Source: Takakia lepidozioides (Eukaryota > Plantae > Bryophyta). From it: 64,000 bases of DNA. Below, piece by piece: positions 13,956-62,822 of this stretch. Under the pieces are notes generated by a model. That model worked only from the letters and a program-made list of their open reading frames with translations, did no database searches and was not told the DNA's origin. Each line of letters opens with the position of its first letter. Positions within the stretch are counted from its first letter, which is position 1. Both the position numbers and the translations under genes were made by a program. Location: positions 38,068,001-38,132,000 of the forward strand of contig CM060733.1 in NCBI GenBank assembly GCA_030704615.1, given 5' to 3'.

Positions 13956-14853
13956 GCTTGCCCTCCCCTCCTTGCCTTGAGCAGCACACCAGTACAGCTG
14001 CACATCTCCATCCACCAGTGACTTTATCCAGGAAGAGCCCTCGGTGTGCTTCTATTTTGCACACAGTCTCGATTCTTCAGTCCTACTTAGCAGCTGCTGT
14101 AAAGTCTGAAAAAGCAAGTGGATTTGATCACCTGCTGTGGACATGGAGGATCCGAAAAGGTTTAGATCTACATGGCTGGGTATTGCTGCTATTTTTGCTC
14201 GGCCGTCTTGCTGCCTGAGTGCCATGTCTGGCAGTGAGTGGTGACGCGGGGGGGCTCTCCCTAGGCAGTGACTGAGAGCTGAGAACTGTTACGGACAAAG
14301 TAGGACAGGTTTTACTGTGGGAGTGTTGTTCTCCACTGGCATTATGTTCCTCGCTGATACGAGCTCTGGTCTTTCGTTTTCTTGTGAGGACTTCTTCCTA
14401 TTCGGAGCTGTCGTTTTAGATAAGGATTTCGAAGATGGAGCATTTGCTTAAGGTTTCCTCGGCACATCCTGACAACCCTAAATCCATACTGGGTCGGTGT
14501 ACTGGTTGGCTTCAGACTTTGTGACGAGGAATCAAGGGTGTGAAGAATCCAAACTATCAGCTGGGAAGTTCTTGGGTGGGAAAAGTAGCGAGATTCTGAG
14601 TGTATGAGTGATTTCAAGACAAGTGATGGACGCAGCTCGGGGGTGGCCATTAGCGGAACTGGGTCCACTGCCCGTTGGATCGTTGGTGTCTTCAAGTGGA
14701 AGCCCTATGAGCCTCTCTCTTCTTTTGCAACGGAGTCTGAACTGGAATGAGAGGCTCCACGGCGGTGGCAAGCTGTTGTATACTTGAGTGCAGCTTTAGC
14801 GCAAGATGACGAACTCCTAGTTAGTATCTAGGCGAGTGGATGTCAGCCTGGAC

Positions 14854-17800
14854 ATGCTCGATTTATTGCAGGCATCTCCAGACTTACAGTCTGGAAACAT
14901 GTTCACAGCTTCTGGCGAGAGCGAGGATTCATCTGATTCTCATGGGTACCCAATGGCGGCAACAACTGAGAGGAGACAAGAAGTCGTTCGGAATACAGTT
15001 TTAGAAGATCGAGAAGGCTTGCTTCCCTTCTTGAGGGGTCAAGAAAACTGGATGCGGCGAACCACAAGTGATAGGCAGGTCTCCAAACCTTTGGAGCCAG
15101 AGTCAAATGAAGTTCAGGCTCCTAATGACGTCAGAATGAGGGAGAAGAGCAACCTAGGTCCTCGGGATAGACCAGAGTTGAGCAGAGAAAATGAGGCACA
15201 GGATGGTACTCGGATGATTGACTCTCTGGCCTTGGAAGATGCCGCGGCACTGGCCCCTGTTCATGCGTCTCGGACAACTTACGGGCCAGCTTTTTCCCGG
15301 ACCACAAATTTCAAGCAGCTCAACTTGCTGCAATCGCTTGGCCAAGCAGTTGTGTGCACTGATATTGGAGGCAACATCACTTACTGGTAGGCAGTCTCTT
15401 GAATTTCTTATGGTACTTGGGATTGTGGTGTTATTAGAGGATAAGCTAAGACTTTTACCTGACCAACAAATTCTGAATGATGTCTCCGAACTTTAGGGGA
15501 GTGGAGGTGTATTCTTGTGGGCTTCATAGGGGGGATAAATTTCATGGTGTCACATCATGTCCGTGTCACAGTGGGAGGGTTGTACGTTTGATGTGTGCTC
15601 CAGAAAGTGAATGGAGACGAAGGAGTTGTAGAGTGAACATTTGAGAATGGTGCCATGTGTGTAGGAGCGGTGACTTCATTGTATAGTGTTTGACGAAGTG
15701 ACTGTCTGAAGTTATGATACGGACCCTTGATTTGGTGCAGGAATCGGGCAGCTGAGTCCTTGTACCAATGGAAGGCAGAGGAGGTGATAGGAAAAAACAT
15801 AGTGGATCTTCTAATCCCCCCAAAACTAAGGCAGGGGTCAGTTGAGATTGTTGCACGAGTGGTTCAGGGTGAATCGTGGTCTGGACAGTACCCTTGCCTT
15901 CGGAGGGATGGAGTTATATTGAACACTGCGGTTACCAAAACACCCATTGTTGATGACAATCAGAATATTGTAGGTATAATAGGAATTTGTATAGATGTTG
16001 GTGCAATTTATGCTCCAAATAAAGGTATCATGAAAAGAAGCTTCTCAGATGAAGGGCTTGGCAGTGCAGTTGTGGAGGATGTCCTAGGCTCACAATTGAA
16101 GTGTGAATCAATTGAGGTGCCCCCACAGACTGCTGATGAAGAGTCAGGAGGGAGAAACTTATTGGTGAGTACATCGAGGAGAAATTGAGGGGGTTGAGAT
16201 TTTCCTTGACCTACAATGCTGCATTTTGGTTTGTTCAAGGTTTACTTCATTACAAGTTCTCGTTGTCAATGATCTACGATTTTTGTTCTATTAAGTCGTT
16301 GGAGAGACCTGAGCCTTAATCATTTTGACCATGTAGGAATTATCAGCTAAACTTTGACTTTGCTTCCTGCTTAATTTTGTATGCAATGAACCCATAATTG
16401 TGGGCATGGGAGGTCAGCAACTCTTTTGGAGTTTGTTGTGGGATTGAATCATGATGACGGAGCACAATTTTGAGTGTTGGAAGTGATTGGTTTGGCAACA
16501 GAAACTGGGGCGGAGCTCAGTTCAACAGCTGTTGCGGAAGCTTCACATTGGTGGGGGCAATCGATGGGAAGACGATGATTCTGCCAACCCCCGGCAGGTA
16601 CCCGAAAGGCAAATTTCTTGGGATTCTGAACAAGACGGTGCCGGTGAGTTGTTGCCTGAAACTGGACGAGGTTCACATGGGTCCCAAAGCTTGGTGCAGA
16701 ATGACGGATTGTCAGGCACTGATCCAAGTAGTGCTGACAGAGTTTCTCTTCCCCTTGTGATGGTTGGTCATGGAGCTGGGCCCTACATGATGGGAAGAGA
16801 TGCGGGGATTGAGGACCCTGCTGATCAAGTTTCAGCTTTTGGAGGATTTCAGGTCTATTTCACTTAACTATGACTCTGTCTCTGTCTCACACATTTGTCT
16901 ACTCCTGTACACAGCACATTTGTAAGGCAGAGTGCTAGAGCTGCAGTGCTGGAATCAACCACATGCTTTCCAATATGATGGCAACACTGTATGTTTTCTT
17001 TCTGGATTGTATTGGCTTTCCTGAACCCTATGGTAATTTCTGGTGACTCTCATAAACCTACTGGTGGTGGAAAGTGCATGTCATGGGATGGTCTATGTGG
17101 ACATCTCTCTGTCTTCCACACACATATGGAGACATGCCAATCATTTGGCTGGCATTATTTTGGAGACTGTGTTTGTTTCGAAAGTGTGAGGGGGAAGTGA
17201 ACTAACCAGACAATGCAGGTCCTAATATACTGTTTAAATGATTATAACAAAACAGTTAGATTCACCAGATCAGCAAGTCGATGGAGTGAAGATTGTGGAT
17301 TCGGATTGACGGCAGGGTTGCACTCATGACCTTTCGAGGGATACATGTCCAACAATTTGCACCAACAATACAGTATTTTTTACTATGCTTATGTGCCAAT
17401 CGACAAATAAATGAAGGGTGTCATTCAAAATACATGAACATGTATTGTTACAGGTCTAGGTCCAGTTCAAGATTCATGTAGGTATAAGAGCAGAAGGCAT
17501 AGTGAAACGGCGTCATTAGATTTGTTTCCTCATTTCAGGTACTTTCTAGGACGTCAAGCGGGAGCGCAGCTGGGTCTGTAACAGGTAGCCCTGTGGTAGC
17601 ATCGGTTCAGGGAAGTTCTGCAGAGAGTAACTCATTTGGAGTGGCCTCTTGGACTGGGCCTGGGGGTGGGATCAACTTCCAGCAAGCCGAAGAAGACTTC
17701 CAACTTCAGCTAGCCCTTGCCTTGAGGGTTGCAGCAGAGGCTGCGGCAGTCGATGACCCAGATTTGTCAGCCAACACAAGGGGTCCTCATGGAAGCACTC

Positions 17801-20800
17801 GGTTGATGCCAGGTATCAGCCGGGTAGAGGCTACTGCGTACCGATATTGGGTGAGTAGTGAATGAGGCGAACTTGAGTTTGAAATCATTGGTTCAGATTG
17901 GTGACTCGCCCTTTTTAAAGATGTTCATCCTAATGACTGCATTTCTGGACCACCTTTCAGTTCGTAGGAAGGTGTAATGTATTGTCTTTGAATTTTATGC
18001 GCTGACTGTCTATTTAGGTGTTGACTGTCTATTGAGGTGTTGGCGAGTAGCAGTCTTAGAACCGGAGAAGAGTTGTTTGGTAGAGTGAAAAAAGTCCTTC
18101 GCACCTCATTAACTAGGTGGGAGGTATAGATAGAGCAGGGTATGGCATGCCTCCGACAGCCACAGGGTGGTGGCAAGAAACGTATCTTCCGATCACTGAA
18201 CTAGATATTTTCTGCACAGGTGAGCAACTGCCTCGGCTACGACGACCGTATCGAGGATGGCTTCTACGAAGTATGGGGGATGAGCCCGTATGTTTGGTCC
18301 ATGTGCACGGATTCTAATGAGCTGGGGCGTATGCCTCCTTTGGAATCGCTCCGTTCTGTCAAGCCCGCAGAAGCCACTTTTGAGGTTGTCTTGGTAGACC
18401 GGCATGGAGATCCAGATCTGCGCGAACTCGAAGACAAGGCTGTGGGTCTTGCATATGATTCCCAGGAGGTATTGGACTTGGCAACCAGGTTGGCTCAAAT
18501 GGTTGCATCTGTCATGGGGGGCCCTGCTGCTTCTGACAATGACTTGATGGAGGCATGGCATATTAGTACTTCCAAAATGACACAGCTTTTAAGCAGCATT
18601 GTACTACCTATTGGGATTCTTCGGGCTGGACTGGGAAGACATCGTGCCTTGCTCTTCAAGGTATGAATGTCTGCATACACATGTTTTCCTTCTTTCCTTC
18701 TATCTAGCACATCATCCAGGAAGTCCAGCTCTAGAAGCCGTGCAAGGTGGTCAGACATCGCACTAAAGTTAGTAGACAGTGAAAGTGGCACGTGGATATT
18801 GAACTCATTCAGATGTCAGTTTGTGATCAACCTCTTCTGTGATCACTTGTGTGCTTCTAAAAGAGCTGTGATGTGTTGGTGGCATATAGGATGAAAATGG
18901 TGAAATGTGTTTGTTCCCAGGTAATGGCAGATAGTGTTGGACTACCTTGTCGCCTTGTGCGTGGGAGCGCTTATTGCAGTAAAGAGGATGATGCAATGGT
19001 GGTTGTTAAGTGTGGTGATGACAGGTAGCTTTTCCCGCAATCTTGTCCATGAGAGTTGTTGGCATTAAGGAAAGGAGATTACAGCTTTGGGTACTGAAAA
19101 CACCAGGTCCCTTGCAACCATTGATTCATATTGTTACCATGAAGTCAATCAGCTGTTCAGGTAGAAAGAAGTTATTTGGCTCCATGCATTTATAGAGGGG
19201 CTGGGTAGGTTAGCACCGTGCATTATGACCTTCCCGTAGCAACCTGTCAGTCAGTACTTACTGACAAGAATCATTTCCTTCAGGGAATGGATGGTGGATC
19301 TTCTTGCCAAGCCAGGGCTCATCATGGCCCCTGATGCTCGACTAGCTGCGCCACCCGCTGTAATTGCATCTCCGCTGCAGTTTGAGAGGCCTAGTCCATT
19401 TGCAGGTAGTAGCGTGTCAGTATTGGACTGGGCGCGAGGTGCAAGAGAGATTGGACACAGTGGAGGAGCCATAGGCAGTCGGCCCTGGGTTGCTGCTGAG
19501 CTTACTGCCAGCAGTGCTGTGTCAACAGTCCCTTTGAAGGCAGTGACTACTGAACCTATAAGGGTTGTGCCTGCAAGCTCTCCTGTTGCAGGAAATCCTC
19601 GCCCGTGGCGAGGGGGGATTCCATCACCACGTGGCCAGGTTTCTCCGCAACCACCCTTCGACTTCTCTCCATTGTTATTCGATGGTGCAGGGAGGAATAC
19701 TTCTTTGCAGGAAGGCAGTGAAGGCTCTCCGAATGAAAGGGGAGGTGTGCAGGCTCCAGTTGGTTCTGGCGGGCAGTCAGAGAACGAAGACAGTGGCAGA
19801 GCCAATGGGAGGGGCCTATCAAGTAGCCAGGGCGACGATCCAAGCCAGTACTCGAGAGGGAGATTGGCGGAGCATGCAGTCGCATTTGCTAAAGAGTTTG
19901 AAATTCCCTGGGAAGACTTGATGATCGGAGAGCGGATAGGACAAGGTGTGTGATTTTTGGGTCCCTAGATATGCCTCTTCATAGATTCTCCTTTCAACAG
20001 AATCAGCTGTTCTTCCACCTGTTCTTTGTGTCAAAGAGACCACAAGGTTTTCCTGAAAAAGATTGAACGATGTAAGCAGATCTAACAATCTAGTGGAATT
20101 AACTGTTACCTTACTACTGCTACAATTTTAGCAAGAGTGGACAATGTATTTCCTAGACTTTGACTTTCCTTCATACTTTATATGTCTGAGTAGATAGCCA
20201 TCTTTTTCTTGGCACAATCGCTAACAAAATGTGTATATGTCCAGCTCATGCTTCATGACTGAAATTTCCCCTTTAAATCTAGTGCATACTGCTACCGATG
20301 GGTGATGATGGTTGAGCCTCCAACTCATTAAAATTTTCTATTTCCAGCTCTATTGTTGCAAGTCCTAAGTTTGGCCTTTGTCAAGTACATCTGAAGTGGG
20401 TGGGTGATATACATGAAAGTTCTTACATTGTTCAGTAATGGATGCGTAATCGTGGTGTGATGAGTGGTGTTGCAGGCTCATATGGTAAGGTCTATCGCGC
20501 CGACTGGCAAGGCTCGGTGAGTGGCATAATTTCCAGCTTTTCTGAAGTTTTCGTAGTGTGTTGTTATCAAACTGGTTACGTCTTGGTCTATGCCTGTCTC
20601 TGGGTTTTTTTTCTTGTGTCACTTCTCTTGCTTTTTGTGTTACTTTGTCTCTTCTCTTTCTCTTGTCTCCACTGGTGCTGAAGCTCTATAGCCAGCTCCA
20701 GGAGTGTTTGTATCCCAGGATGAGGGATGCCAACCAAGGTTTTCAGGGAATAGCAAGCCTTTAAATAACTCTCTCTCTCTCTCACTCTCTCTGGGCTAGT

Positions 20801-23800
20801 TCCCGCTCAAACTGGGCGCGGGGTCAATGGCCACAAGGCTACGGCAAACAACGTCTTATGAGTACAATCTCTCTGGGCTAGGGCAAACAACGTCTTATGA
20901 GTACATTCTCTCTCTCTCTTCCACCCAAACTGGGGTTCCACAAACTGGGCGCTGGGTCTATAGCCACAAGGCTACAGAAAATGTCTCGTGAGTACTTTCT
21001 CTCTCTCCTGTGGAGGCTAGGAGCCAATGTTGGTAAATGTGCGGTGGTGGCCTTAATAAGATGGAGAAGGGGATCTCAAATGGACATGGGGCAGTGAAGA
21101 GATCCTGGACTGCCTTCCTACACATATCTTGGTGTCGAGTTTTCCTCCAGTTGTAACTGGGATGCATATACGAAAAGTGGTTCAAACAGCTAAACACAAA
21201 GTTTTGGGTCTCTCAATTTTTCCACTGTAGAGGGATTAACAAGCTAAAAGGTCCATACTTTGCAATGCCATTAGGCCCTTGGAGTATGCATCTGCCGCGT
21301 GGGTTGGCAACTCCAACCATACTAAAACTTTAATACCATTCAGCTTTCGTATTTGAAGAGAGCATGTCAGCATGCTCTAGAACAGCTATTGTGGCTGTTT
21401 GGGGCGAGTTTGGCGTACTACCCTTGAGCTCTCAACGAGATGAGGTCAGTTGAATCGCATGCCTAATATCAGATACCCTACGATGATCGGCTCTGTTTCT
21501 TGGAAGCAAGATCACAAGGTAGAGTCTGCTCCCTCTTGTTCCGTCTGAACTGGGTGTGGGGCCTATGGCTCCAAGGCTATGGGAAACAATATCTCATGAG
21601 TACAGTCTCTCTCTCCCTCGCTTTGATTCTCTGCCCCACCATTTCCACAGCTGCTCTTTGGGAGGTCCAAGGAAAGAGGCAGAGGTAGCATGATCCATCC
21701 ACAAGAGTAGACTCACAAAGGTGACCGAGTTGCAAGTCTTTGTGAGAAGCTTGGAACATGTTAGCCCACAAAGGGTGGGGGGGTTTATGGTTGATTGTGC
21801 TTGCAGGATGTTGCTGTGAAAGTGTTTTTAGATCAAGATTTGAAAATGGAGGCTCTTGAAGAGTTCAAGAGTGAGGTATTTCCCATTGGTGCCAGATTTT
21901 GTTCTTATTCACACGTTATTCATTGATTTTGTTTCCTCTTGCCAGAGAGGAGGTGACTGTTGATATTTCTATTAAGGGACAGACAACACAAGTAGTGGTT
22001 CTTTCGGAAAGGTTGTTACCGATCCTGCATCTCCATCAGTGAATATTTTTTTGTGTGAAATCAAGGTCAACATTTGACCAATCTAGTGTGGATGGGTGGA
22101 CATGGTTTTTGATGCAGGTGGCCATTATGAGGCGATTACGACATCCTAATGTTGTACTTTTCATGGGCGCTGTCACAAAACCTCCAAACTTGTCCATCAT
22201 AACTGAATTTTGTCCAAGGTTTGGCTTTGAATCTGCAGTCTTCAATTTTTTTCGTTTTGAGCAATGTTACATGGTCAGCACTTGTGGGTTCTGGGAAATT
22301 GAAGAACTTGAGGGAGTGAATGTTATATGAAATGATAGTTTACCATGAGTCCAGCTGCACAGGTGGCTAAGAAACTAGCTAATCTCCCCCATTCTGTGTA
22401 GGTGTCTTTTATTCCAGGTTTCAGTTCTGAACTCTTCCCAATTGTAGATACATGCTCTCTGATTGCTTTGTTCATTGTCATAAGTTCAGTGGAAACTTCA
22501 GTTTAGGCAAGTGAGAGAATGTCATGGTTGGTTGGACGCAGAGGAAGTCTCTACAGACTGCTGCATAGACCAAATCGGGAGCTAGATGAGCGGCGGCGCA
22601 TCCGCATGGCTTTGGATGTGGTCAGTGTCTTACTTCATTTGCTGAGATGCCAACGCATAGGGATGGGAAGTAGAAGGATGCGATGGCAAATGATGGAGGT
22701 CTAGAAAGGGGAATATTGCATCCATAGGCACTGTATTGCACAGCATATTGAGATCATTCTGCTAATTTCATCCGTTTATGGTTGGCCATTTGACTTGCTT
22801 TGTTTGCAGGTGAAGGGAATGAACTATTTGCATCGCTCCTCACCCCCCGTTGTACATAGGGATCTAAAATCTCCGAACTTGCTTGTTGATAAGAACTGGA
22901 CTGTGAAGGTAAGGTCTATCATCTTTGCCTTGCCCCTTTCTTAAAGTAATGAATTGCATCCAAGGTTGAGCTTTCCTTCAGCTGGTTTCAAGCTCAGGTG
23001 ATGCTGATTGTGTCACCGAGTATACTAGGGTGGTAATTTTCCAGCAATCTCTGCCACTCCCTGTATTTTTTATTCAAAACCATAGTGGTGTTATAGTAGC
23101 AATACCTCCAATGCTTGTCATCATCTAAGTGGAAGAGATTATGTGTTTTGCTATGAGGTACTCCGGGAATACAGGTTCCTCAGGATGATGGGCCTTTTGT
23201 GGCGGTTAAGAGAGAGACATCCGAGTGTTTGCTCAGTTGGGAGATCATGCTCCTGGGTTTGAGGTGACCACAAGTGATTGTCTGTGGACGGCCTACTTAA
23301 GGGATCCTCCCTGGTTGTGCTGAGGGTTGCATAGTGCATTACTTGGCTCTAGCCTCAACACCCTGTTTGGGATTAGAGGTTCCAATTTGACACGCTTTTG
23401 CCGAACCACTTTAAAACATGCCCATGTATGGAAGCTGGGCAATAAAGCAGAGCGCCATATCCAAGGGAGAGGAAAAGAAAGGTAGGGGACAGTGACTGGG
23501 GTAGTCGGTTAAAAGGAGGGGAGAAGGGAAAATGTACTGATGATGTGCTGCCTGCTATAGTCGTGCAGCAACGGAAACTGTGCTCGATTGGACAAGGCAA
23601 AGAAAGGGGAGGGGGAAGCGAGAATGTTGGATAGTAGGGGGGAGACACTTTAGACACCACTGGCTCACTCTGTAGTGAGACTTGCCAGGGTCTATGCAGA
23701 AAGGGGTGTACTCATTATCTGTCTGACACTTACAAAGAGGCTGCTTGTTGAGTAGGGCTACCCAGGCACTACGAAACATTTGCTATCCTCCACAGATGGA

Positions 23801-25595
23801 CAGAAGTTGATTTACTGTGTAGATGTAGGCAGCCTACTGTAGACACAGATGTCTGTAAACGTATTTTTTGCCCGCTTGAAAGCCGCTGACAGTGAAGCAT
23901 GTCTCTTCAGGTTTGTGATTTTGGACTTTCGCGGTTGAAGCATAGCACTTTCTTGTCTTCTAAATCAAGCGCTGGAACGGTAAGTACTCTTTCAGATCTG
24001 GAGGTTATCCTTGTTAGTGTACTTCCTTCCTGGCTGCTTATTCACCAGTCTCTCTTGTGAGGTACCGCAGTACATGCCTGATTTAGGTGGGTCCTCTCTG
24101 AAGACTGGTGTTTGATGTAGGAGACTAATTTCTCACAGAAGTGGTCAGTCATTCTGTGTGAAGAAAAAAGTGACCAAAATATCTGTTGATTGCCTTACTA
24201 CTGCAGAGGGTGAACATATATTTTTTTTCAGCCCATGATCATATTTTCTGCACTTGATACTGATGCAGTTAAGCAGTGAATGCACTCCCATACCCTAGTT
24301 GTAGGTCAGTATACCATTTTGTCCATGCAGAGTGGTGAGTTGAGTACTCCTATTCTCAAGGTAGGAACTACGATTGTTTTCCTGAAGTCAGTGCATGACG
24401 AGGTAGTGAGTGGAGGGGCTTCAATGTGGGTCTTTCAGGAAGAGCTGTGTTGGATATTTTGAAAACAGCTGTCACAGTGTCTCTGTATTGCCTGAAGGCA
24501 ACATGATGATAGGCAAGTGGCTTAACAAGTTGTCTCCTGTTTACTCTGCAGCCGGAGTGGATGGCACCTGAAGTCCTCCGCAATGAGCTCTCTGATGAAA
24601 AGTATGTCACCAACCTCATGATTTCATTTCTCAAATATCTTAGATTCTGTCATGTCCGTAGGTTATATGAATCAGTCAATCCGTTCCCTGTACAGGATCG
24701 AGGCTTAGTGGGTGGTGTGGTGGGTCTTGTATGGGACTCCAGATCGGACGTGTATAGTTTTGGTGTGATTCTGTGGGAGCTTGCTACCCTTCAGCAGCCA
24801 TGGTCCGGCATGAACCCTATACAGGTTTGCTTCATTTCTTTTTTCTTGCAAGATGTGGGAATTGCACACGTTCAAGATTTGTCTCTGTTGCACATGATCT
24901 TCCCAAGCTGGAGTAATACTCTTTGTTTTACTTCCATATACTTGGGTTGATCGATTTATTTACTCTTCTTTGTTTACTCTCTCAACAACAACTGACAAAT
25001 GTGCCTGAACAATAATTTAGAACTGTTCTCTTGTTTCAGGTGGTGGGGGCTGTTGGGTTCCAGCACCGGAGGCTTTCAATCCCTGAGAACATTGATCCAG
25101 CTGTTGCCAACATCATTCAAGCATGTTGGCGCATGTACATTTCGTTTCCTTGTGTACTTGCCTAAGTTTCCTGTCTTCTCATGTAACAAGGTGTTGTCTC
25201 TAACACCACTTCTATGTTCCTCTCAAACTGGGCGCGGGGTCAATGGCCACAAGGCTACGGCAAACAATGTCTTATGAGTACACTCTAACACCACTTCTTG
25301 GGAGGGGAGTACTATTCATCTATTCCATGGCATCCTGCTTGATGTGATCTTCCTTCTTGAAGTTACTCAAAAGTAATATTCTCTCAACCATCCATGAGGA
25401 GGGCTGTATTAGAAGTTATCTTCTTACTAGTGCATGTATGTGGTTGGCAGGGATCCAAGGCAGCGACCTACTTTCTCAGATATAATGCAGGAGCTGAAGG
25501 TCTTGACAAGACCTACAATGGCTCAGCCAGCTGCTGGTTCAGGAGCTCCTGTCCAACGAGCGAACCCTGCACATGAGGGGTTTGGGCATGATTAG
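14854..25595 (+). CDS. ARK: PAS-EDR1-kinase Raf-like MAPKKK (ANR/ARK/CTR1L type), 17 coding exons
   Basis: Exons 14854-15386, 15741-16164, 16502-16852, 17539-17850, 18220-18660, 18921-19024, 19284-19945, 20476-20516, 21807-21875, 22118-22218, 22542-22620, 22810-22908, 23911-23979, 24552-24601, 24743-24824, 25040-25134 and 25451-25595 join in frame. They encode PAS ([14 protein letters not shown]), EDR1 ([23 protein letters not shown]) and a kinase domain ([31 protein letters not shown]). The start codon is uncertain. Confidence 0.93.
20800..20995 (+). mobile_element. Cluster of 3 very short 3'-end copies of the LINE at 4398-5390 (intronic)
   Basis: 20800-20867 is flanked by the 14-bp TSD tctctctgggctag (20786-20799, 20868-20881). 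Further ...ttatgagtaca-type ends occur at ~20905 and ~20995. Confidence 0.9.
21010..21604 (+). mobile_element. Older internally deleted copy of the same LINE
   Basis: Contains [16 protein letters not shown] and an IRP.LEY.SA.W-like segment homologous to 5120-5385 (reverse complement), then jumps to the family 3' end (...ctcatgagtaca). Confidence 0.8.
25214..25282 (+). mobile_element. 69-bp 5'-truncated LINE copy in the last intron of the kinase gene
   Basis: Near-identical to the family 3' end, with a 16-bp TSD ctctaacaccacttct at 25198-25213 and 25283-25298. Confidence 0.92.
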
Positions 25596-26996
25596 GGTTG
25601 TGCGGCTTCTGTGACTCTCCTTGGGTCTTGCCAAAAAAAACACTCCAGAGGTAATTCTCTTGGGAGGTGCTTAGCCCAAAATCTGCAGACATATTGAAAA
25701 GGCTCTTAACTGACATCAGGATGGTTTTGAGTATCCAAAGACAGCTGTCATTCCTGATGGGCTAGTATGAAGAAGGTTGAGGTAGAACTGGTTTTGTGAA
25801 AGATCCACAGCAACAGCCTTTGTAATTTTATAGTAGGGAGTTCAGGAGTTAAGTGTAGATTGGTGTATTGCCGGTGAAATTTGGTGGGTTATTGTGTTGA
25901 CTGTTTAAAATTTACCTTGATAATTGCAAGGTAGTGTGTTTCTCAATCTTTATTAAGTTATTTAGCTGTCATATGAAAGGCGTCTTTTGCCATGAAAATG
26001 GGTTGGGTTGTTACATTTTTCATTGATTGTTTAGACCCTTGGCTCAGGTGTAGTGAGTTCAAAAATGTGCCAAGTTATCCATTCCTATTGCAGAACAACT
26101 GGCACTGTAGTTGAGATATTGAGGAATAGATGAAGGAAGTATGCGGCAGAAAGAATGTAGGCAGTGGCCTACACTTTTAGAAGAGGCTGGGCTCCAAGAA
26201 AAAGAGCTCATGGAAACTAAGTTCTGGTAACACTTTTTCAGACTTCTGTATTTGTATTTGGATGTTTTTCACTTTCATATTCTCTTTGTGATCTTTTGCC
26301 AACAGAATGAAAAATGGATAATAGCATGTGGATTTATGATATCAATGTAGTTGCAGTATGCTGATGAAGTTTTTTGGTTGGTAAGGACATTATATTTGTA
26401 GTTCAATGTGGTCACAAGGGAAGTCAAAAAAGTAAGTCTATTTTCTGTGTATGTTGGCAGTGAAGATGTACCAAGTTCTGTCGATGTATGGAGTGATTCG
26501 GATTGAAAGTCAACCATCAAATCAACAATTTCAGGGTATGGAAACATGCACAAAGGAACTTAGCAACACCCAACTTCTCAACCACCATGGTTAGGAATTT
26601 TTGGTGGCATGACTGTGTTGAAGCTGCTTGGCTTGTCCTTGACATGTGAAAGAAACAAGGCATATCTAAAATCTTCCTGGGCATGACAATACTTTTCCCA
26701 ACACATACAAAACTTGGGGAAAATGAGGGTGTACCATTGCTTACAGACGGCGCGCTTGTGAATGGCCTTGTCCAGGTGTCCATGCCAAAACCATCCTCGA
26801 GTACAAACGCGACACTCTCTTCATCCGTTGAGGCCAAGCTAGTGCCAAATTCCTGGCTACACTACCCACCATCAATACTGTCGTGGTGGGTACCATCATG
26901 CCTGCAATATTGTTCCCGGCTTGTGCAAAAGTAAGGACAATGACCTTCGCACCCTCAGTTAAATTCACGCAGTTTCTTTCAGGAATGTTGTTGGTT

Positions 26997-29972
26997 TCAC
27001 CAGTAATCACCACAGGAACAAACCCCATCTTGGAAGTGGTGAAAACGGGCAGCATCCCGCACAACAATTTCTCGACCAACAATCTTCGAGATGAACTTGC
27101 TGGCAGTGTGGCAGTCACCACACACCCGAAGGTTCTTGATGATCTGGACAGGCGTCCCAGGAGGCGTGCTGATGAGCCCAAACGCAATGGCCAGCTTCTC
27201 ACTGTGGTGGCAAAGAGAAAACTCCTTCAGCTCCTTTTCCACATCTTGCAATACAAAGCGTGTGTCAGGCACATACCCCACCTCCTTCATCTGTCCAGAC
27301 AATCTCTTAAGCTCCAGGTGGATCTCCTCAATTTGTGGGTGCAATTTGTCTTCAACAAGGAATGTATGCACCCGATTGCCGACCTCAATGCAGCTGTGAC
27401 CGGGCTCCTTCCTGACACCTCTGTCCTTCATCATTTTTCTAACGTTTGCTTGATCATCCCACCTGCCAGCTGCAGCATAGATGTTCGATAGCAGCACATA
27501 AGTTGGAGCATCGTGTGGATCCAACTTGAGACAGCATTTTGCCACACGTTCTGCTAGCTCCACATCCCCATGAATTTTGCATGCACCAAGCAAGGCCCCC
27601 CACACCGACCCATCGGCTTGAATTGGCATTTTCTTAATGAAATCCTCTGCCTCATCCAATTTTCCTACACGGCCAAGAAGGTCCACCATGCAGCCAAAAT
27701 GCTGGAGTGAAGGAGTGAGGCCATAATCTTGACTCATGCAATCAAAGTAGTGGTGGCCCTCATTTACCAGGCCCACATGGCTACATGCAGAGAGAAGGCA
27801 TATGAAAGTGATACCGTCTGGCTTCAAGCCTTCCTGTTGCATTTGTTCAAATAGGTGGAGGGCTTCCATACCACAGCCATGCTGAGCACATCCTGCCATC
27901 ATTGCATTCCACGAGATCACATTTCGTTCGGCCATATTGTTGAAAACTTGATGTGCATACCTCAGACTCCCACATTTGGCATACATGTCGACAAGAGTAT
28001 TCTCCAAAGTGATGTCTGGTATGATTCCAGCTTTAATGATTTCAGCATGTAGCTCTTTCCCCTTTCTGAGGGCTGCCACGCTGGCACATGCATTCAGAGC
28101 AGCAATGAATGTGACTTTGTTAGCCTTGACCCCTTCCCGTATCATTTGCTCATACATCTTAAAGGCCTCTATACCACAGCCATGCTGGGCATATCCTGCA
28201 ATCATTGCACTCCATGAGACCACATTTCGGTCAGCCATATTGTCAAACAAGTGACGTGCATCCTTCATGTTCCCACACTTGGCATACAAGGCAACCAGGG
28301 CAGTCTCCAGAATGACATCTGGCACAATTCCAGCTTCGAGGATGTCAGCATGGACCTTTTTGCCCTTTTCCAGGGCTGCAAGGTTGGCGCACACCTTCAG
28401 AATGGAAGTGAATGTGACTTTGTCTGGCATCACCTCTTCGAGTATCATTTGCTCATATATCTTCAAGGCCTCCCTACCATCCCCATGCTTCGCATATACT
28501 GCTATCATTGTGTTCCACACAAACATATCTCGTTCGGGCATGTTATCGAACACTTGGCGTGCATCCACCATGCTTCCACACTTGGCATACATGTTGTGAA
28601 GAGTATTAAGTAAAAACAAGTTTGGCTTGAATCCAATTTTGATTATATGGGCATGCACCTGCTTTCCCTCCGTCAGGCCTTGCATGTTAATGCACTCCTG
28701 CAAGAGAGAGACATAAGTATTGGAGTCTGCCCAAATGTCTCCTTCATTCAAAATCTGCAGGGCCTCTTTCAGTTGTCCTGCTTTACATAGTGTCCTCACA
28801 TCACCACAATGTGCTTGACCTTGAAACATGGCAGCTAGCCCTGCTTTCACCCAGGGAGGGGTTGACCAACCATCAACCCAAAGAGCCTCCTTAGTGCACT
28901 TATGCCTGAAATCTGGTGATCTTGGACTTCTCTGTGACAGCCACCAGTAGGCAGCTGAGCAGCCATAGCTTAAACCACTGCAGAGATCATCAAGCATCTT
29001 TCAAATAAAAGGAAACAATCTTAAGCAACACGTTTTAGTGCCTTGTTACAACCTCCTGGTAGAAACATCTGTCTTTGCTTCATTGTTGAGACAAAGAGCA
29101 AAAATATCTGATGTGAGCACTGGAGGTGGCACACAACATCATCATGACAGCTTCAGTCATGAGCCCTCCTCGGCAACTCTTTGTGTGCTGAATGAAGAGT
29201 AGCCTCACCTTATCAATCCTGTTGTCCCACCACTGTGAAGGATCTAAGAAGAACTCCTGCCAGAGCTGATCCTCGCTCATGGTTTGGCCTGCATGCAGAC
29301 GCCTCCTAGATACAATCGTTACCAACTCCTAATTGATAGCAGTCTTAGTCTATGATCTTAGAGCAGCGTTTTATAATTCTCACACACACGCACTGCACTG
29401 CAACAACCATATGTGTTATCTCTGTGTCGGATTGGGGGTTCCTAGGAAACGTTCAATGTGTACACCTCTCTGGGGAAAATTTAACGCTGCATTTGCTCCA
29501 GAGGGACTATCTGTGGTAATCAGCGACCCAAGTGTGAACTTGTCGTGGGCTGTGACCTATCTCTCTCCCATACACCAAATGGCAGAGAAACTGATGGGAG
29601 TAGGGCTACACTCTTCTATGACCACAAAGCAAATTAACTGACAAAAACGGGTGTAGTTTCCGTAGAAACAGGAGTAAATGGAGCCTGCATCTGCACCAAG
29701 CTTGCATACCCAACAAAATGCATGGAGCCTTCCATATCTATACCTTTCTCTGGTTCCCCTCGAGAGAGGTGAGGCATCATAGCCATCGCTTGGGCAGGCC
29801 GGGGCCTCGACTTTGCCAAGCAGGATACGCATCTCAGCTCCACAGCCTGACCCGTTGATCTGTCGCATGCTGTCAAAATTCCCACCCGCTCAACGCAAGA
29901 AGAATTAAGGGCCTTGGCTATGGCCTCTCGGAGAGGGTGCGCGTTCAGTAGAGCAGGAGAGCCCGCTTCCAT
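26997..29972 (-). CDS. PLS-class PPR protein with E1/E2/DYW (C-to-U editing factor) and N-terminal OSB-like PDF motif
   Basis: Exons 29972-29744, 29288-29209 and 28931-26997 splice in frame (GT-AG). The protein has 11 PPR motifs (L-S-P...P2-L2-S2), a PG box KEPGHSCIE, HSEKLA, CGDCH and a terminal DYW. The exon 2/3 junction gives LWQEFFLDPSQWWDNRIDK|RSPRSPDFRHKCTKEALWVDGWSTPPWV. Confidence 0.92.
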
Positions 29973-30592
29973 CCCTGGGCCTGCGACACATAAAAAAATA
30001 AGCGGCAGCAATAAGAGAGTGGCAAACGAAAGCAAAACTATTCGTGCTTGTTTCAAGTATTCAAACAATCTCTGTCTACTAAGCAGTAGAAAAAGGGCTC
30101 AGGCATGCTTAGAACATCACTCCTCAACATGCTCAATCTCGTCCTCTTTTCCCAAGATTTACCATTTGTAGCTCTGACGGAGGTGCTACCCAGTTGTGGC
30201 ATTCATGCAAAGAGCCTGAAGAATCCAAGACGCAGGCCGCATCTGATTTTGAAAAACTTCTTGTATGAGAGAATGGGTCCAGCGATCTGTCTTGTCTCGT
30301 CTCTCTCTTTCTCGCTCTCAAAGAATTCCTGGAGCAGTGCAGCACCACGTTGTCAACGGGCTTGAAGGCAGTTAGGGTCCCCGTTACACAAACGGCACTA
30401 TAACGGAAGCCTGTATTTCGCTAATTATTTCCGTCACGTAACAGGTGCGGAATGAAAAAGAACGAACGAGAAAAAGAGAACGAACAGAAAACGACCAGTC
30501 CCAACTGGTTCCCTCGTTCCCACCTCCAGCCCCAGCTCCTTCCTGCCCGTCCCAGTCCTCCTTCCTGCCCGAGGCCGCCTGTTGTCCGGGCC

Positions 30593-34135: not shown

Positions 34136-37100
34136 TCTGGAACTTTTTAAACTTTGTCACTATCCACATGAAGGTAAAGCTTAAGTTTCAGGTTTATGGG
34201 CTTGACTGTACTACCTACAAACAGATAGTTCTGCTATCCCAATTGTTATCCATTTTGTCTTTGTTTTTTTAAATCACCTTCAGAACAGTAGTCAAAACAT
34301 TCATTACTAACTATTATAAAAATAGATTGCATGGATTAATAATACTACCTATACAATTAAGTCCTCTAGAGCATACACTAAAGCACTACCTTAATTTGGA
34401 TAGTGACAAAGTTCACAAACACTTAAGAATAAATACTGAATGTTTAACTACCTTGGGTCCACAAATAAGAATTGAAATATCTTGGAATGCATACATATTG
34501 TATATAATGTGCTAATACAACTGTCTTGAGTGATCTTGCTTAGACATTTATCCCCTAGTTTTCCTAACAATGCAAGCCCCAATGTCATCACCATGTTAAA
34601 AAATATATTGAGATTCAGAAGTAAATCCCATTGATACGAGTTGTTCACGAGTGGTTGTTACTCTTGCACGAGGTCGTGTACTTAGTGAGGTGACACGAGC
34701 ATGGGCACGACTTCGACCTCGACCACAACCTCGACCAACAAAAGCAATATGATCTTCTAATATTTGGGCTGCACTATGCACTATCTTCATATGTGGTTTC
34801 ATGTTCCTTGGGATTGTAACTACAATAGGGAGAGAGTTTTCATAGATGGAAGGAGTCGGAACAACCTAAATCAATCTATAAACCCTAAAACCCTCAATGA
34901 ACTAGTCCAGTATGAATGTTATCATGATTGAGCACTACATCCATGCACATAATCATACATTATTGTTGTCTAATAAACATTACAACTATAATACGTAGTT
35001 TTTTAATCCTATGTTATACTATATATATGAGGGAATGACTAAGTGAGAGAGAAAAAGAAGAATATCCATCTTGGAAGTATCATAGCATGAACACTTGTTA
35101 AATGTATATGTCCTGAGTAAGCACCATCCCTAAACCCTACATCATTATGGTTGTTTGTTAAACTCATTATTAATAGATATTTTTCATTCTATGTTATACT
35201 ATATATAGAGAGAAAGAGAGAGACAATTCAAAGAATATGTACAAGTAGATAGTCCACAAACAAAACATCATAATTAAAACATCATAATTATTATGTAGTT
35301 TTACATTCTATGCTATACTATGAATGAGAGTGAGAGTAAGAAAGAGAGATGAAGATATAGATAAAGATTCTTTAACGTCCAGTGAATTTACAGAGCCTAC
35401 TGCTCAACACACACGCCATCGAGGGCCCAATGGACGGTCTGAAGGCACATGTTGAAGGATTGAACCCAGGATCATCTAGGTTATGCACAGGCAAGGCACA
35501 AAGTTGAATCAAAATAAATATCTACAAATAGTCAACACAAAATAAGGAAAAGAATCAGGACCTAACTTTATATTGGGGTTTTTGTTTTCTCCTCTTCTTC
35601 CACTTCCTCTTTTACCTCATATTTCATCTTCTCCTTCCTCTTGTGAACTAATAGAATCCTATGCAAGAAGGTGAAAGCTGCTGGAGCTTACAAAATTAAG
35701 GATTTCAATTGTTTAAAATAGCAATAGTTTAAAATTGGACTATGTCAAGGGTCAAGGTTGTGGTTAGGTCAGGTTAGTTAGGGGGTTAAGGTGGGCGTGG
35801 GGCGAGCTGGGGGTATGAGGGAGGGCTCGGGCAGCAGGGCTGGGCAGAGCGGCCAGAAAAAAGTTGGTGACAGGAGGTCCTTGTACCTCTGCAGACAAAA
35901 TTCAGAGGCGGACTAGTAGTTAGGGGGAAAGAGGGGGAGAGATTGAGAGATTCGAGGAGGAGACAAGTGGGTGAAAGAGAGGAAGAGATGGGGAGAAGTA
36001 TGAGTAGACATCAGGAGAAATCTCCGAACTCAAGATGTTTTGTAGGTGTGGGCTGTACATTCTGTACCAGCCCTTGCATTTTCAAAACCGCTCTGCATTG
36101 AGATTGCAGTGGAGGCCAGGAGAGGAGGAGAGCTCAACGGACTGGGAGATGGGCAAGTCTTTCACCCGGAGGAGGAGAGCAATGGATGGCCACGTCCGCC
36201 TTTGGTGGATGCATATTTCCACAACAACGGCATTCCTCAAAAAGTTTACCAAGGCCAGTGTTAATTCTATCAGTCCTTCAACCTCACTCCGCATCCTAAA
36301 TGAAACAGCGGGTCGCATCTGTCAGGATTCTAGGAAGGATGAGCATTGCTTCTGAATTCTTAGCAGCCTTTCTGCAGAGTTTTTCCACCTAACATATGCA
36401 GGGATTTTTATTTCTTTGCATGTCTCTCACCTACGCACATGTCCTGTTGGACTTGGGGTTGTTTTTGGTTAATCAAAATTTCACCCTTGCAGATCACTAT
36501 ATCGTGGAAGGAAACGTCATCGGGGGTGTGGGACACAAATTTGGAGGTCCTGGCTGTGGGCTAGTGTCACGTGGGAGAGGAACCAGAGAATTCAGGTTGC
36601 CCTTCCTTTACCCTCGATGCTCCCTCCGCACTGTGCTTGGGGGCTATGGTCGCAATGCATACGGAAACTAATTGATGTGTATCCATGTCTCTCTCGCAAT
36701 TCCTAGAGAAGTCGGTGTGGTCTACGTTAGAAGGCCTGCTTAGAGCAGAGAGACCGTAGTGCCCAATAATATATTCTCCTAGAATGCGAGTGGTTTCTGC
36801 AGCCTTCTTAACAATCCGATGATGATATGCCACATGAGGCTGTGACTGCACTAGCAGTCACACTTGCTTTGAGAAAGGGGGGAGAGAGGTGAGAATTTAA
36901 TAGAGGGCGTACATTAGCCTCCTCAATAAGCCCCCCATCAAATCATCTATGATTGAGCAATAGGCCTCCGGAGCAAAAGCTGGCAAAGTCTCATGGCCTT
37001 GTCCTTGCATACAGGTCAAGCACAGAGCAAGGAACCGGTCTGCCAAGAGCTGTTCTCAGATCCTTCACAGTTGTGTGACAACAGCTTTGATAAGGTGGTT

Positions 37101-37672
37101 CTATCTTTATTTACTCTGTGAATGGGGTTTGTAAAGGAGGATTTTTAACTGATGCTTAAATAGTTGATAATTTCTCTTTTCGTGAGAATTTAACAACAAA
37201 AGCGGAACTTACCACTCCTGAAAGTAGGTAGGTTGTTAAAGATTGGTCCCTGTTCTTTGAAAACTGCTTGGAGCGCTGGTGATTGGTATGGTCTATGTGT
37301 GGCTGTGGTTTTAGCTATGGCTGCTCAGCTGCCCACAGGTGAGTTTCACAGAGAAGATGTGGGATGTCAAAAATTCATTGGACCAAGTTATGCAGCTTCG
37401 TATCCATTATCACAATCGTTGCTCAATTTAAGGAATGGCATTATCTCAATATGCGGAATGGCCTTTCTGTTTTCTTTGACATGTCAATTTATTTGTAACT
37501 TGGTTTGAAAGATATATTTCAACCGGGTCCTTTGCTAATTTGCATGAGATTCCAGGTGCCCTATGCTATTGTGTTGGAGCTCGCCCTTGTGAGGTCACAG
37601 CCCCTGTCCCACCATTGTGGCATATGTGTCGCCCAGGGTTAGAAGAAATTTCAATGCAAATAACAAACCGGA

Positions 37673-39865
37673 ATGACAGGCAAATATCTTTTGATAAGGA
37701 CGCTCTTCGGTCATACTATCCTGTCAAGATCACCCAATTTCAAACGGAAGCACTCAAACCAGGCCCTTTGGATTGAGGGTTGCTCAAGACGTTCTTGGGT
37801 GATAGCAGCCCTAGCTGCCATGATACAAGGTCGAGTACAATCTGGTGATGGAGTCAACAATAACTCTTCTGGCTCTTGTGGGGATGTGAGGACACTATGT
37901 AAGGCAGGACGACTTAAAGAGGCGCTGCACATTTTGATCAAACAAGGCATTTCGGCAGACACCAATTCCTATGTCTGTTTTCTGGGGGAGTGCATCAGAA
38001 GGCAAAACCTTGACATGGGAAAGCAGGTGCATGTGCACATTATCCAACACCAAGTCAATCCAAACTTATTTCTTCTGAACAACCTTGTCAACATGTATGT
38101 CAAGTGTGAAAGTGTGGTAGATGCACGCCTAGTGTTTGACAAAATGCCTGAACGAGATGTGTTTACATGGACCATAATGATGGCAGGATATGCTCAGCAC
38201 GGGTTGGGCAAGGAGGCTTTCGAGGTTTATAAGCAAATGATACAGGAAGGAGTGCCGCCCAACAACGTTACTTTCATTTGTGCCCTCAAGGCATGTGCTA
38301 GCCTAGGATCCCTGGAAAAGGGCAAAGAGGTCCATGCTGACATCATCAAAGCCGAAGTCTCACCAGATATCATTCTGGAGACTGCCCTTGCTGCCATGTA
38401 TGCCAAATGTGGGAACGTGATGGATGCACGTAAAGTTTTCAACAATATGGCTAGACGAAATGTGGTCTCATGGAGTACAATGATCGCAGGATATGTGCAG
38501 CATGGATGTGATAGGGAGGCTTTCGAAGTCTATGAGCAAATGCTACAGGAAGGGGTGACACCCAACAAAGTCACATTCATTTGTGTTCTGAATGCATGTG
38601 CCGGCCTGGCGGTCCTGGAAAAGGGCAAAGAGGTCCATGCTAGCATCATTAAAGCTGGAATTAAACCGGATGTCATTCTGGAGACTGCCCTTGTCGACAT
38701 GTATTGCAAATGTGGAAATATGAAGGATGCGCATCAAGTGTTTGGTGACATGGCTCAACGAAATGTTATCTCATGGAATACAATGATCACAGGATATGCT
38801 ATGCACGGGCGTGGGAGGGACTCCTTTGACCTCTATGAGCAAATGATACGCGAAGGGGTGACACCCAACAAGGTCACCTTCATTTGCATTCTCAATGCAT
38901 GTGTCAGCCTGGCAGCCCTTGAAAAGGGCAAGGAGGTTCATTCAGACATTATCAAGTCTGGGATTGCATCATACATGAATTTGGAGAATACCCTTGTTAA
39001 CATGTATGCCAAATGTGGAAGCATGAAGGATGCACGTCAAGTGTTCGACAATATGATTAAACAGGATGTGGTCTCTTGGAACACCATGATCACAGGATAT
39101 AGTCAGCATGGGAGTGGTAGCGAGCCTTTTGAGATGTATGAGCAAATGGTATGGGAAGGGGTGCTTCCTGATGAGGTCACATTCATTTGTCTTCTCAATA
39201 TGTGTGCCAGGATGACTGCCCTGGAAAAGGGCCGAGATATCCATGCCGACATCATCAAATCTCAAATTGCATCATTTATTAATCTGGAAAATACACTTAT
39301 GAACATGTATGCCAAATGTGGAAGCATGAAGGACGCACGTCATGTATTTGACAGTATGGCTAAACAAAATGTGGTCTCATGGAGTGTGATCATATCAGGA
39401 TATGGTCAGAATGGGTGTGGTAGGGAGGCCTTCGAACTATTTGAACAAATGCAACATGAAGGCTTGAAGCCAAATGGTATTACATTCATGTCTCTTCTCT
39501 CTGCCTGTAGCCATATGGGCCTACTGGACGAAGGCCGTCACTACTTCAATGCCATGAGCCAAGAATACGGCCTCACTCCTACAGCGGACCATTTTGGTTG
39601 CATGGTGGACCTTCTTGGCCGGGCAGGGCGACTGGAGGAGGCAGAGGACTTCATTAACAAGATGCCAATCAGTCCAGGTGCTTTCGTGTGGGGGGCGTTG
39701 CTTGGTGCCTCCAGAATTCATGGCCGTGTAAAGATAGCTGAGCGTGCGGCAAGATGTCTTCTTGAGTGCGATCCACAGGATGCTTCAACTTATGTGCTGC
39801 TATCAAACATATATGTTGTGGGTGACAGGTGGGACAATACGGCAGGGTTAGATAATGATAGATGA
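37673..39865 (+). CDS. PLS-class PPR protein (17 repeats), E-truncated, no DYW; paralogue of 26997-29972
   Basis: Intact 730-aa ORF of L-S-P repeats ending in E1/partial E2, with a decayed PDF motif (SRSPNFKRKHSNQALWIEG). Upstream exon homologues occur at ~36550-36594 and ~37015-37094. The true start is uncertain. Confidence 0.85.
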   Translation: MTGKYLLIRTLFGHTILSRSPNFKRKHSNQALWIEGCSRRSWVIAALAAMIQGRVQSGDGVNNNSSGSCGDVRTLCKAGRLKEALHILIKQGISADTNSYVCFLGECIRRQNLDMGKQVHVHIIQHQVNPNLFLLNNLVNMYVKCESVVDARLVFDKMPERDVFTWTIMMAGYAQHGLGKEAFEVYKQMIQEGVPPNNVTFICALKACASLGSLEKGKEVHADIIKAEVSPDIILETALAAMYAKCGNVMDARKVFNNMARRNVVSWSTMIAGYVQHGCDREAFEVYEQMLQEGVTPNKVTFICVLNACAGLAVLEKGKEVHASIIKAGIKPDVILETALVDMYCKCGNMKDAHQVFGDMAQRNVISWNTMITGYAMHGRGRDSFDLYEQMIREGVTPNKVTFICILNACVSLAALEKGKEVHSDIIKSGIASYMNLENTLVNMYAKCGSMKDARQVFDNMIKQDVVSWNTMITGYSQHGSGSEPFEMYEQMVWEGVLPDEVTFICLLNMCARMTALEKGRDIHADIIKSQIASFINLENTLMNMYAKCGSMKDARHVFDSMAKQNVVSWSVIISGYGQNGCGREAFELFEQMQHEGLKPNGITFMSLLSACSHMGLLDEGRHYFNAMSQEYGLTPTADHFGCMVDLLGRAGRLEEAEDFINKMPISPGAFVWGALLGASRIHGRVKIAERAARCLLECDPQDASTYVLLSNIYVVGDRWDNTAGLDNDR

Positions 39866-50679: not shown

Positions 50680-50978
50680 GCCTGTGAGGACGTGAGGGCA
50701 CTCTGTAAGGAAGGACGACTGAAGAGGCGATGCACATTGTGAACCAAGGAGGCGATGGGGCACACTATAATAATTATGTTTTTGTCTTGCAGGAGTGCAT
50801 CAACAAGAGAGACCTAGCAGAAGGTAGACAGGTTCATGCCCACATTATGCAAAGTGGATTTCAGCCAAACATCTTTCTACTCAACACCCTTGTTACCATG
50901 TACGCCAAATGTGGGAGCTTGAAGGATGCACGTCAAGTATTTGAAAAAATGCCAGATCGCAATGTGGTCTCATGGAGT
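50680..50978 (+). pseudogene. Truncated PLS-PPR stub (first L-S repeats only)
   Basis: CEDVRALCKEGRLK, then a frameshift, then MHIVNQ...YVFVLQECINKRDLAEGRQVHAHIMQSGFQPNIFLLNTLVTMYAKCGSLKDARQVFEKMPDRNVVSWS, followed by unrelated sequence. Confidence 0.85.
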
Positions 50979-62295: not shown

Positions 62296-62822
62296 CAGTT
62301 GGGACTTGTCGTTTTCTGTTCGTTCTCTTTTTCTCGTTCGTTCTTTTTCATTCCGCACCCGTTACGTAACGGAAATCATGAGGGAAATACAGGCCTCCGT
62401 TACTGTGCCGTTTGTGTAACGGGGACCGTAACTGCCTTCAAGTCCGTTGACAAGGTGGTGCACTGCTCTAGGAATTCTTTGAGAGCGATAAGAGAGAGAC
62501 GAGACAAGAGAGATCGCTGGACCCCATCCTCTCAGACAAGAAGTTTTTCAAAATTGGCCTGGGTCTTAGAATTTTCAGGCTCTTTGCATGAATGCCACAT
62601 TGACTGGGTGGCACCGTGCAAGGGCTATAGCCTTGACACCTCCAACAACCTTCGTCATAGCTACAAATGGTAAATCTTGGGAAAAGAGGACGAGATTGAG
62701 CATGGTGGGGAGAAGTGCTGTTCTTAGAAGCATGCCTGAGCCCTTTTTCTACTGCTTAGTAGACATAGATTGTTTGAATACTTGAAACAAGCATGAATAG
62801 TTCATTTGCCACTCTCTTATTG
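62296..62822 (+). repeat. Inverted duplicate of the PPR-DYW gene 5' region (30008-30507)
   Basis: Continuous similarity from cagttgggac.tgtcgttttctgttcg to tttgccactctcttattg with the reverse complement of 30008-30507. Confidence 0.9.
62614..62647 (-). mobile_element. 34-bp remnant of the tRNA-TRIM LTR 5' end
   Basis: ccgtgcaagggctatagccttgacacctccaaca is the exact reverse complement of the LTR start at 7082-7115. It is absent from the paralogous site at ~30185. Confidence 0.9.

Follow-up and report, generated by a model that had tools for sequence, protein, structure and literature searches.

Editing factors of the PLS-DYW class recognise a short stretch of RNA through their PLS array and use their DYW domain to deaminate the cytidine that lies four positions past the last repeat. 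A gene of this class in Takakia lepidozioides carries, in front of its array, a motif known from the organellar single-stranded DNA-binding (OSB) proteins. This raises the question of how a DNA-maintenance module came to stand on an RNA editing enzyme, and what it may do there. The locus was analysed within a stretch of 64,000 nucleotides (the window), to which all coordinates refer.

The whole gene is on the minus strand. Its exons 29972-29744, 29288-29209 and 28931-26997 are open and form a single frame down to the stop codon (26999-26997). As read from the sequence, both boundary pairs (29744/29288 and 29209/28931) are of GT..AG type, with phases 1 and then 0, and leaving out the 80-nt exon shifts the frame. 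The original prediction had named these three exons, which indeed stand in frame, but exon 1 starts at 29980 and a further upstream exon, ending at 30163, had been missed. It had also pointed out that the open reading frame track splits the motif, and this is correct: the ORF starts at 28997, within intron 2, and lacks the first motif half. This start was rejected. Exons were searched one by one, and natural homologues were used for folding and alignment of the module and of the fusion. The gene has the following features:

30163..30314, minus strand: upstream exon, the upper end being a minimum (contig pieces and depth arithmetic)
29744..29980, minus strand: exon 1, N-terminal region, with the originally predicted ATG 29972 (contig ends)
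29289..29743, minus strand: intron 1, 455 nt, GT..AG, phase 1 (contig end at 29743; little or no depth inside)
29209..29288, minus strand: 80-nt exon, first PDF-motif half, ending in WWDNRxxK (46.6 bits on the PDF profile)
28932..29208, minus strand: intron 2, 277 nt, GT..AG, phase 0, within the PDF motif (joint in contigs)
28833..28931, minus strand: second PDF-motif half, with PDF, ALW and PPWV (54.1 bits on the PDF profile)
27612..28724, minus strand: PLS array of 11 repeats, with a partial P-like repeat in front (Pfam and repeat reading)
27408..27611, minus strand: E1 and E2 motifs (PF20431, E 6.5e-19)
26997..27407, minus strand: DYW deaminase domain, PG type, 136 aa, with HSE at 27206, CxxC at 27122 and the terminal DYW (PF14432, 1-93 of 93)
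26460..26996, minus strand: transcribed 3' region, presumed 3' UTR (contigs with 1 and 4 differences over 26460/26534-27039)

The proposed junctions were checked in transcript contigs from two runs of separate studies; the contigs skip GT..AG introns, and their RNA nature is presumed. The 277-nt intron (29208-28932) is spliced out: the joint 28931-29209 occurs together with the intron ends in three contigs of one run and nine of the other, part of which probably derive from paralogues, and contig depth within the intron is zero. The joint of intron 1 (29744/29288) is itself not among the contig matches listed, and this intron is supported indirectly, by contig ends. Contigs with 0 and 3 differences stop exactly at 29743 and 29979 and carry extra letters beyond both ends; since this piece is flanked on both sides, there is another exon upstream. 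Near-identical contig pieces, with 0-4 differences, exist for the 3' region, for parts of exon 3 and for 29743-29979, and on the 80-nt exon sit 33 and 87 paralogous contigs, with a common variant. One contig inside intron 1 (29425-29634, depth 6) may represent unspliced RNA or DNA. With the runs taken, by guess, to be RNA, the editor gene is expressed, spliced and open in frame.

For the upstream exon, a donor at 30163 predicts depths of 1.80, 13.2 and 18.2, and the observed values are 1.8, 13.2 and 18.2. A donor at 30190 was discarded because contig pieces and depths fit 30163 instead. This exon contains an in-frame ATG at 30202 (phase 1) and out-of-frame ATGs at 30242, 30206 and 30165, the last being the final codon of the leader exon and the start of a short frame that overlaps ATG 29972. 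The start codon of the editor may be either 30202 or 29972. The product of exon 1, presumably a targeting peptide and a linker, is poorly conserved and has no Pfam match; the 76-aa exon encodes 7 S, 12 A, 10 R/K and 7 D/E.

The enzyme part most likely acts on organellar RNA as other PLS-DYW editors do. Exon 3 contains seven PPR stretches, E, E+ and a full-length DYW domain (E 1e-43) according to Pfam, and the array reads L1-S1-P1-L1-S1-P1-L1-S1-P2-L2-S2, followed by E1 and E2. The DYW domain is complete, with PG box, HSE, CxxC and terminal DYW, and it matches solved domains (PDB 9kfx, E 7.8e-71; 7o4e, E 2.4e-41). Splicing thus joins the motif, in frame, to a complete PLS-DYW protein with both HSE and CxxC kept, as had been predicted. 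U-to-C (DYW:KP) factors have a KP-type domain that lacks the PG box and is altered at HxE and at the C-terminus; the presence of PG box, HSE and DYW rules out that the gene encodes such a factor. A target of the form U-U-n-A-A-n-Y-U at positions -13 to -6 had also been proposed. The fifth and last repeat residues had been read correctly, but the target is too short to be specific: six informative positions lead to about 95-195 expected chance matches per 150-kb organelle genome, so that no target can be named.

To judge from sequence and predicted models, this is a genuine PDF module of the OSB type, in agreement with the original assignment of the motif. It has about 50 residues with the conserved W, WWDNR, PDF, LW and PxWV, and its halves score separately on a profile of PPR-fused homologues (46.6 and 54.1 bits). 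This profile, built from PPR-fused copies only, retrieves 1247 representatives at E <= 0.001, and among its best matches are SSB-domain OSB proteins, one of them named OSB3-like. Across land plants, eight motif positions are invariant and six near-invariant, and the Takakia copy keeps all 14. Between 162 PPR-fused and 159 OSB-type copies, there is no difference in how well the W, D, R, K, PDF and W residues are conserved. For the module, the homologue from Ceratodon yields a predicted model with pLDDT 90.8, which superimposes on an OSB cluster with TM 0.88 and rmsd 1.0, and on three PPR clusters with TM 0.81-0.87 (all predicted models); for this homologue, the predicted fold is that of the OSB module. 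In the model of a natural Sphagnum fusion, PPR, E and DYW regions are confident, while the module has a pLDDT below 50 where the alignment is shallow. Neither by sequence nor by fold does any solved structure resemble the module (best Z 2.3), and a guess that it has a PC4/Whirly-like fold was dropped when the comparison with solved structures gave no support. The protein as a whole is not an OSB protein, which would have an N-terminal SSB/OB fold and C-terminal PDF motifs; Pfam finds no SSB match in any exon.

The PDF fold is also matched by unnamed phage proteins (TM 0.74 and 0.66) and weakly by a bacterial Rad52/22-family cluster (0.45), and these predicted models hint at a prokaryotic, recombination-related origin of the fold. 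A dinoflagellate (Effrenium) protein has about eight PDF repeats, in contrast to a review which states that the motif is limited to green plants (PMC4166229).

The gene had been viewed as a special case; it is instead one member of a large PDF-PPR family. In a profile scan, the module was found in 123 of 236 retrieved proteins and in each of them lies on the N-terminal side of the repeats, with one copy in 79 proteins, two in 38 and three in 6. Both catalytic motifs (HSE and CxxC) are present in 45 of these 123 proteins, and 75 have neither. The set comes from lycophytes, mosses and liverworts, mostly from Diphasiastrum and also from Sphagnum, Ceratodon and Calypogeia, and one fern example was found in Adiantum, which bears out the original statement on similar fusions in seed-free plants. 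In Sphagnum and Calypogeia, the module directly adjoins the first repeat. None of 91 gymnosperm PPR proteins has the module, a count that has to be read with the caution that gene models can miss 5' parts. A homologue search with the first 45 residues of exon 3 alone, which offer too few shared words, returned nothing. The PDF-PPR combination is ancient and is common in seedless land plants. For Takakia, 2,016 PPR genes are given in a recent survey (PMC13386178).

A second PDF-PPR paralogue is found in the window at 37014-39865 (plus strand), 7 kb from the editor gene. It is 74% identical in the array and has the same small exon and intron ends, while WWDNR is changed to LCDNS and PDF to PNF. 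Right behind the acceptor at 37351 there is an insertion of about 360 nt, and the reading frame breaks off in E2, without a DYW domain. This is probably a decaying copy. Other traces are an 81% copy of the gene's 5' leader (30400-30010, including donor 30163) at 62405-62822 (plus strand), with no PPR gene behind it within the window; a PPR fragment at 50683-50978 (plus strand) with partial P, L and S repeats, 75% identical to the array start and then broken; and a faint, stop-broken PDF-motif remnant at 59699-59510 (minus strand; halves with E 0.016 and 0.25), which may be a relic or due to chance. At 14800-25600 (plus strand), a multi-exon gene has the look of a Raf-like kinase (PAS-like and EDR1/CTR1-like regions, kinase exons) and is arranged tail to tail with the editor gene, whose 3' end is about 1 kb away.

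The module was captured at the DNA level from an OSB gene that had the intron, since this intron is common to five fusion lineages and an OSB gene of the liverwort Riccia fluitans. In Ceratodon, Sphagnum, Calypogeia, Diphasiastrum (both copies) and Adiantum, it is a phase-0 intron that follows the same lysine of the motif; in Adiantum, this is clear for the second copy, and greedy mapping places the first within one codon. The small exon has about 80 nt in most fusion genes compared. In the Riccia OSB gene, the same phase-0 intron lies within the PDF motif, and the exon likewise begins in phase 1; the two angiosperm OSB genes that were checked (Chenopodium, Sinapis) lack the intron. At first, the shared intron seemed to prove that the fusion had happened only once. 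This argument was abandoned, because the Riccia OSB gene has the intron and repeated captures would carry it too; by itself, the intron does not give the number of captures. A tree was computed from 307 C-terminal columns of 59 proteins with an intact DYW end; it has no root, and its bootstrap values had not yet converged. One clade (starred, 100/100) unites fusions from Sphagnum, Calypogeia and Diphasiastrum and, as it thus comprises moss, liverwort and lycophyte proteins, at least one fusion occurred before the split of bryophytes and vascular plants. The module label changes three times on this tree, with at least two changes forced, which fits one gain with losses as well as several gains; part of the metagenome rows that lack the label may stem from truncated gene calls. 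The module might have been present in the early land-plant PLS-DYW editor, as a link between C-to-U editing and the nucleoid or nascent RNA, and might have been lost in seed plants as MORF helpers appeared. Three changes are compatible with this scenario, as they fit one gain and two losses, and we nevertheless consider it rather unlikely.

As to the present role of the module, we tentatively favour an ordinary C-to-U RNA editor with an accessory ssDNA or nucleoid tether. The nuclear gene would code for an editing factor that is imported into an organelle, and the PDF module would outlast presequence cleavage and remain attached as a small folded domain. It would bind ssDNA irrespective of sequence, in the manner of OSB proteins, and in this way hold the editor at the nucleoid, close to nascent transcripts. 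The efficiency or timing of editing would be raised, while catalysis would be independent of the module. This reading is based on the match to OSB in profile, fold, conserved residues and intron, and on the finding that the PDF motif alone suffices for ssDNA binding in AtOSB1 (PMC6963530); OSB1 and OSB2 prefer ssDNA over dsDNA or RNA (PMC4166229). Two points count against it. A single module, unlike the OSB2 tetramer (PMC6963530), may bind weakly. Also, the moss editor PPR56 edits well in E. coli and in tobacco cytosol when cut to 14 residues before the first repeat (PMC10482289), from which it follows that an N-terminal module is no general need for catalysis.

It is less probable, though worth consideration, that the module has shifted to RNA. 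It would then bind ssRNA of any sequence on the upstream side of the PPR footprint and keep the target open, as a built-in helper in plants without MORFs. Being N-terminal, it faces the 5' side of the bound RNA, with the close spacing to the first repeat in Sphagnum and Calypogeia, and editing is known to be inhibited by RNA structure and enhanced by upstream sequence (PMC10482289). However, the ssDNA preference of OSB proteins (PMC4166229) speaks against this, and the fused and OSB-type motifs show no clear change in consensus. MORFs are confined to seed plants (PMC13386178), complementary to the absence of the module from the gymnosperm set, but this distribution comes from limited sampling.

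The retention of those residues that are conserved in OSB copies also bears on the possibility that the module does not bind nucleic acid here and is a protein-contact or folding aid, serving oligomerisation, contact with OSB proteins or the transcription machinery, or solubility of the PLS array. Such a role is improbable given this retention, and ssDNA binding is the sole activity of the motif that has been tested (PMC6963530). In its favour, the motif contains much tryptophan, and its net charge is near +1 (the halves of the Takakia copy have 8 basic and 9 acidic residues), and recombinant editors depend on their N-terminal make-up (PMC9508816).

We give little credence to the module being a mere passenger, copied along as the family grew after an ancestral PPR gene had taken an OSB 5' region for its promoter and targeting signal. 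The decayed, insertion-bearing motif of the paralogue at 36.5-39.9 kb and the gymnosperm editors that lack the module would fit this. However, the 14 invariant or near-invariant positions contrast with an unconserved sequence in front of them, tandem module copies have been kept in 44 of 123 proteins, and the Riccia OSB protein has its motif at the C-terminal end, a long way from the targeting signal. Weakest is the original suggestion of deamination of cytosine in organellar ssDNA with the PDF module supplying the substrate: despite an ssDNA-binding-type module and an intact deaminase on one chain, and bacterial DYW-like toxins that, according to paper abstracts, act on ssDNA, we regard it as very unlikely and found no evidence in its support, as the array has ordinary RNA-code residues and the DYW domain is of the ordinary PG type, 75 of the 123 PDF-PPR proteins lack HSE and CxxC so that the module does not go together with a deaminase of its own, and many such enzymes per genome would presumably be mutagenic.

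Editors are usually described as a PPR array with E and DYW domains, and in the papers searched a DNA-maintenance module on a large share of seedless-plant editors is absent from this picture. The literature searched, which leaves most subscription papers aside, contains no publication on a PDF-PPR fusion; this agrees with the original statement that no functional description is known, and an earlier mention is possible. The additional PPR domains listed in a review of Physcomitrium PPR proteins do not include the PDF module (PMC9459714), and PDF-PPR does not occur in those passages of the 2026 kingdom-wide survey that deal with fusions (PMC13386178). Pfam has no model for the module, which an intron divides, and since the heterologous PPR56 assay strips everything upstream of the repeats, such a module would escape testing there. 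While the Takakia copy is one of many and nothing special by itself, the module provides a handle on a possible coupling of organellar editing to nucleoid and transcription, and on how plants without MORFs edit efficiently.

In comparison with known systems, the gene shares its enzyme part with PLS-class DYW editors of the PG type such as Physcomitrium PPR56 and PPR65 and Arabidopsis OTP86 (array end P2-L2-S2, E1, E2, and a 136-aa DYW domain with PG box, HSE, CxxC and terminal DYW) but differs from them by an OSB PDF module that precedes the array and is coded across a conserved intron. With the OSB proteins (AtOSB1-4; Riccia fluitans R1flu_021735) it has the PDF motif in common by sequence and predicted fold, and with the Riccia gene also the position and phase of the intron; in contrast to them, it has no SSB/OB fold, and the motif is N-terminal to PPR-DYW, whereas in OSB proteins it is C-terminal to the OB fold. 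Further counterparts are the PDF-PPR proteins of Ceratodon (M758_3G008300, M758_8G001900), Sphagnum, Calypogeia, Diphasiastrum and Adiantum, with the same architecture and the same motif split. The Takakia copy has one module and a short 11-repeat array, while the others have one to three modules and longer arrays, and many of them stop with the E domain. PPR fusions with RRM, SMR, LAGLIDADG or MORF likewise join an extra nucleic-acid-binding domain to a PPR array, but these are mostly P-class or rare, whereas the PDF-PPR proteins represent a large PLS subfamily whose partner comes from DNA maintenance.
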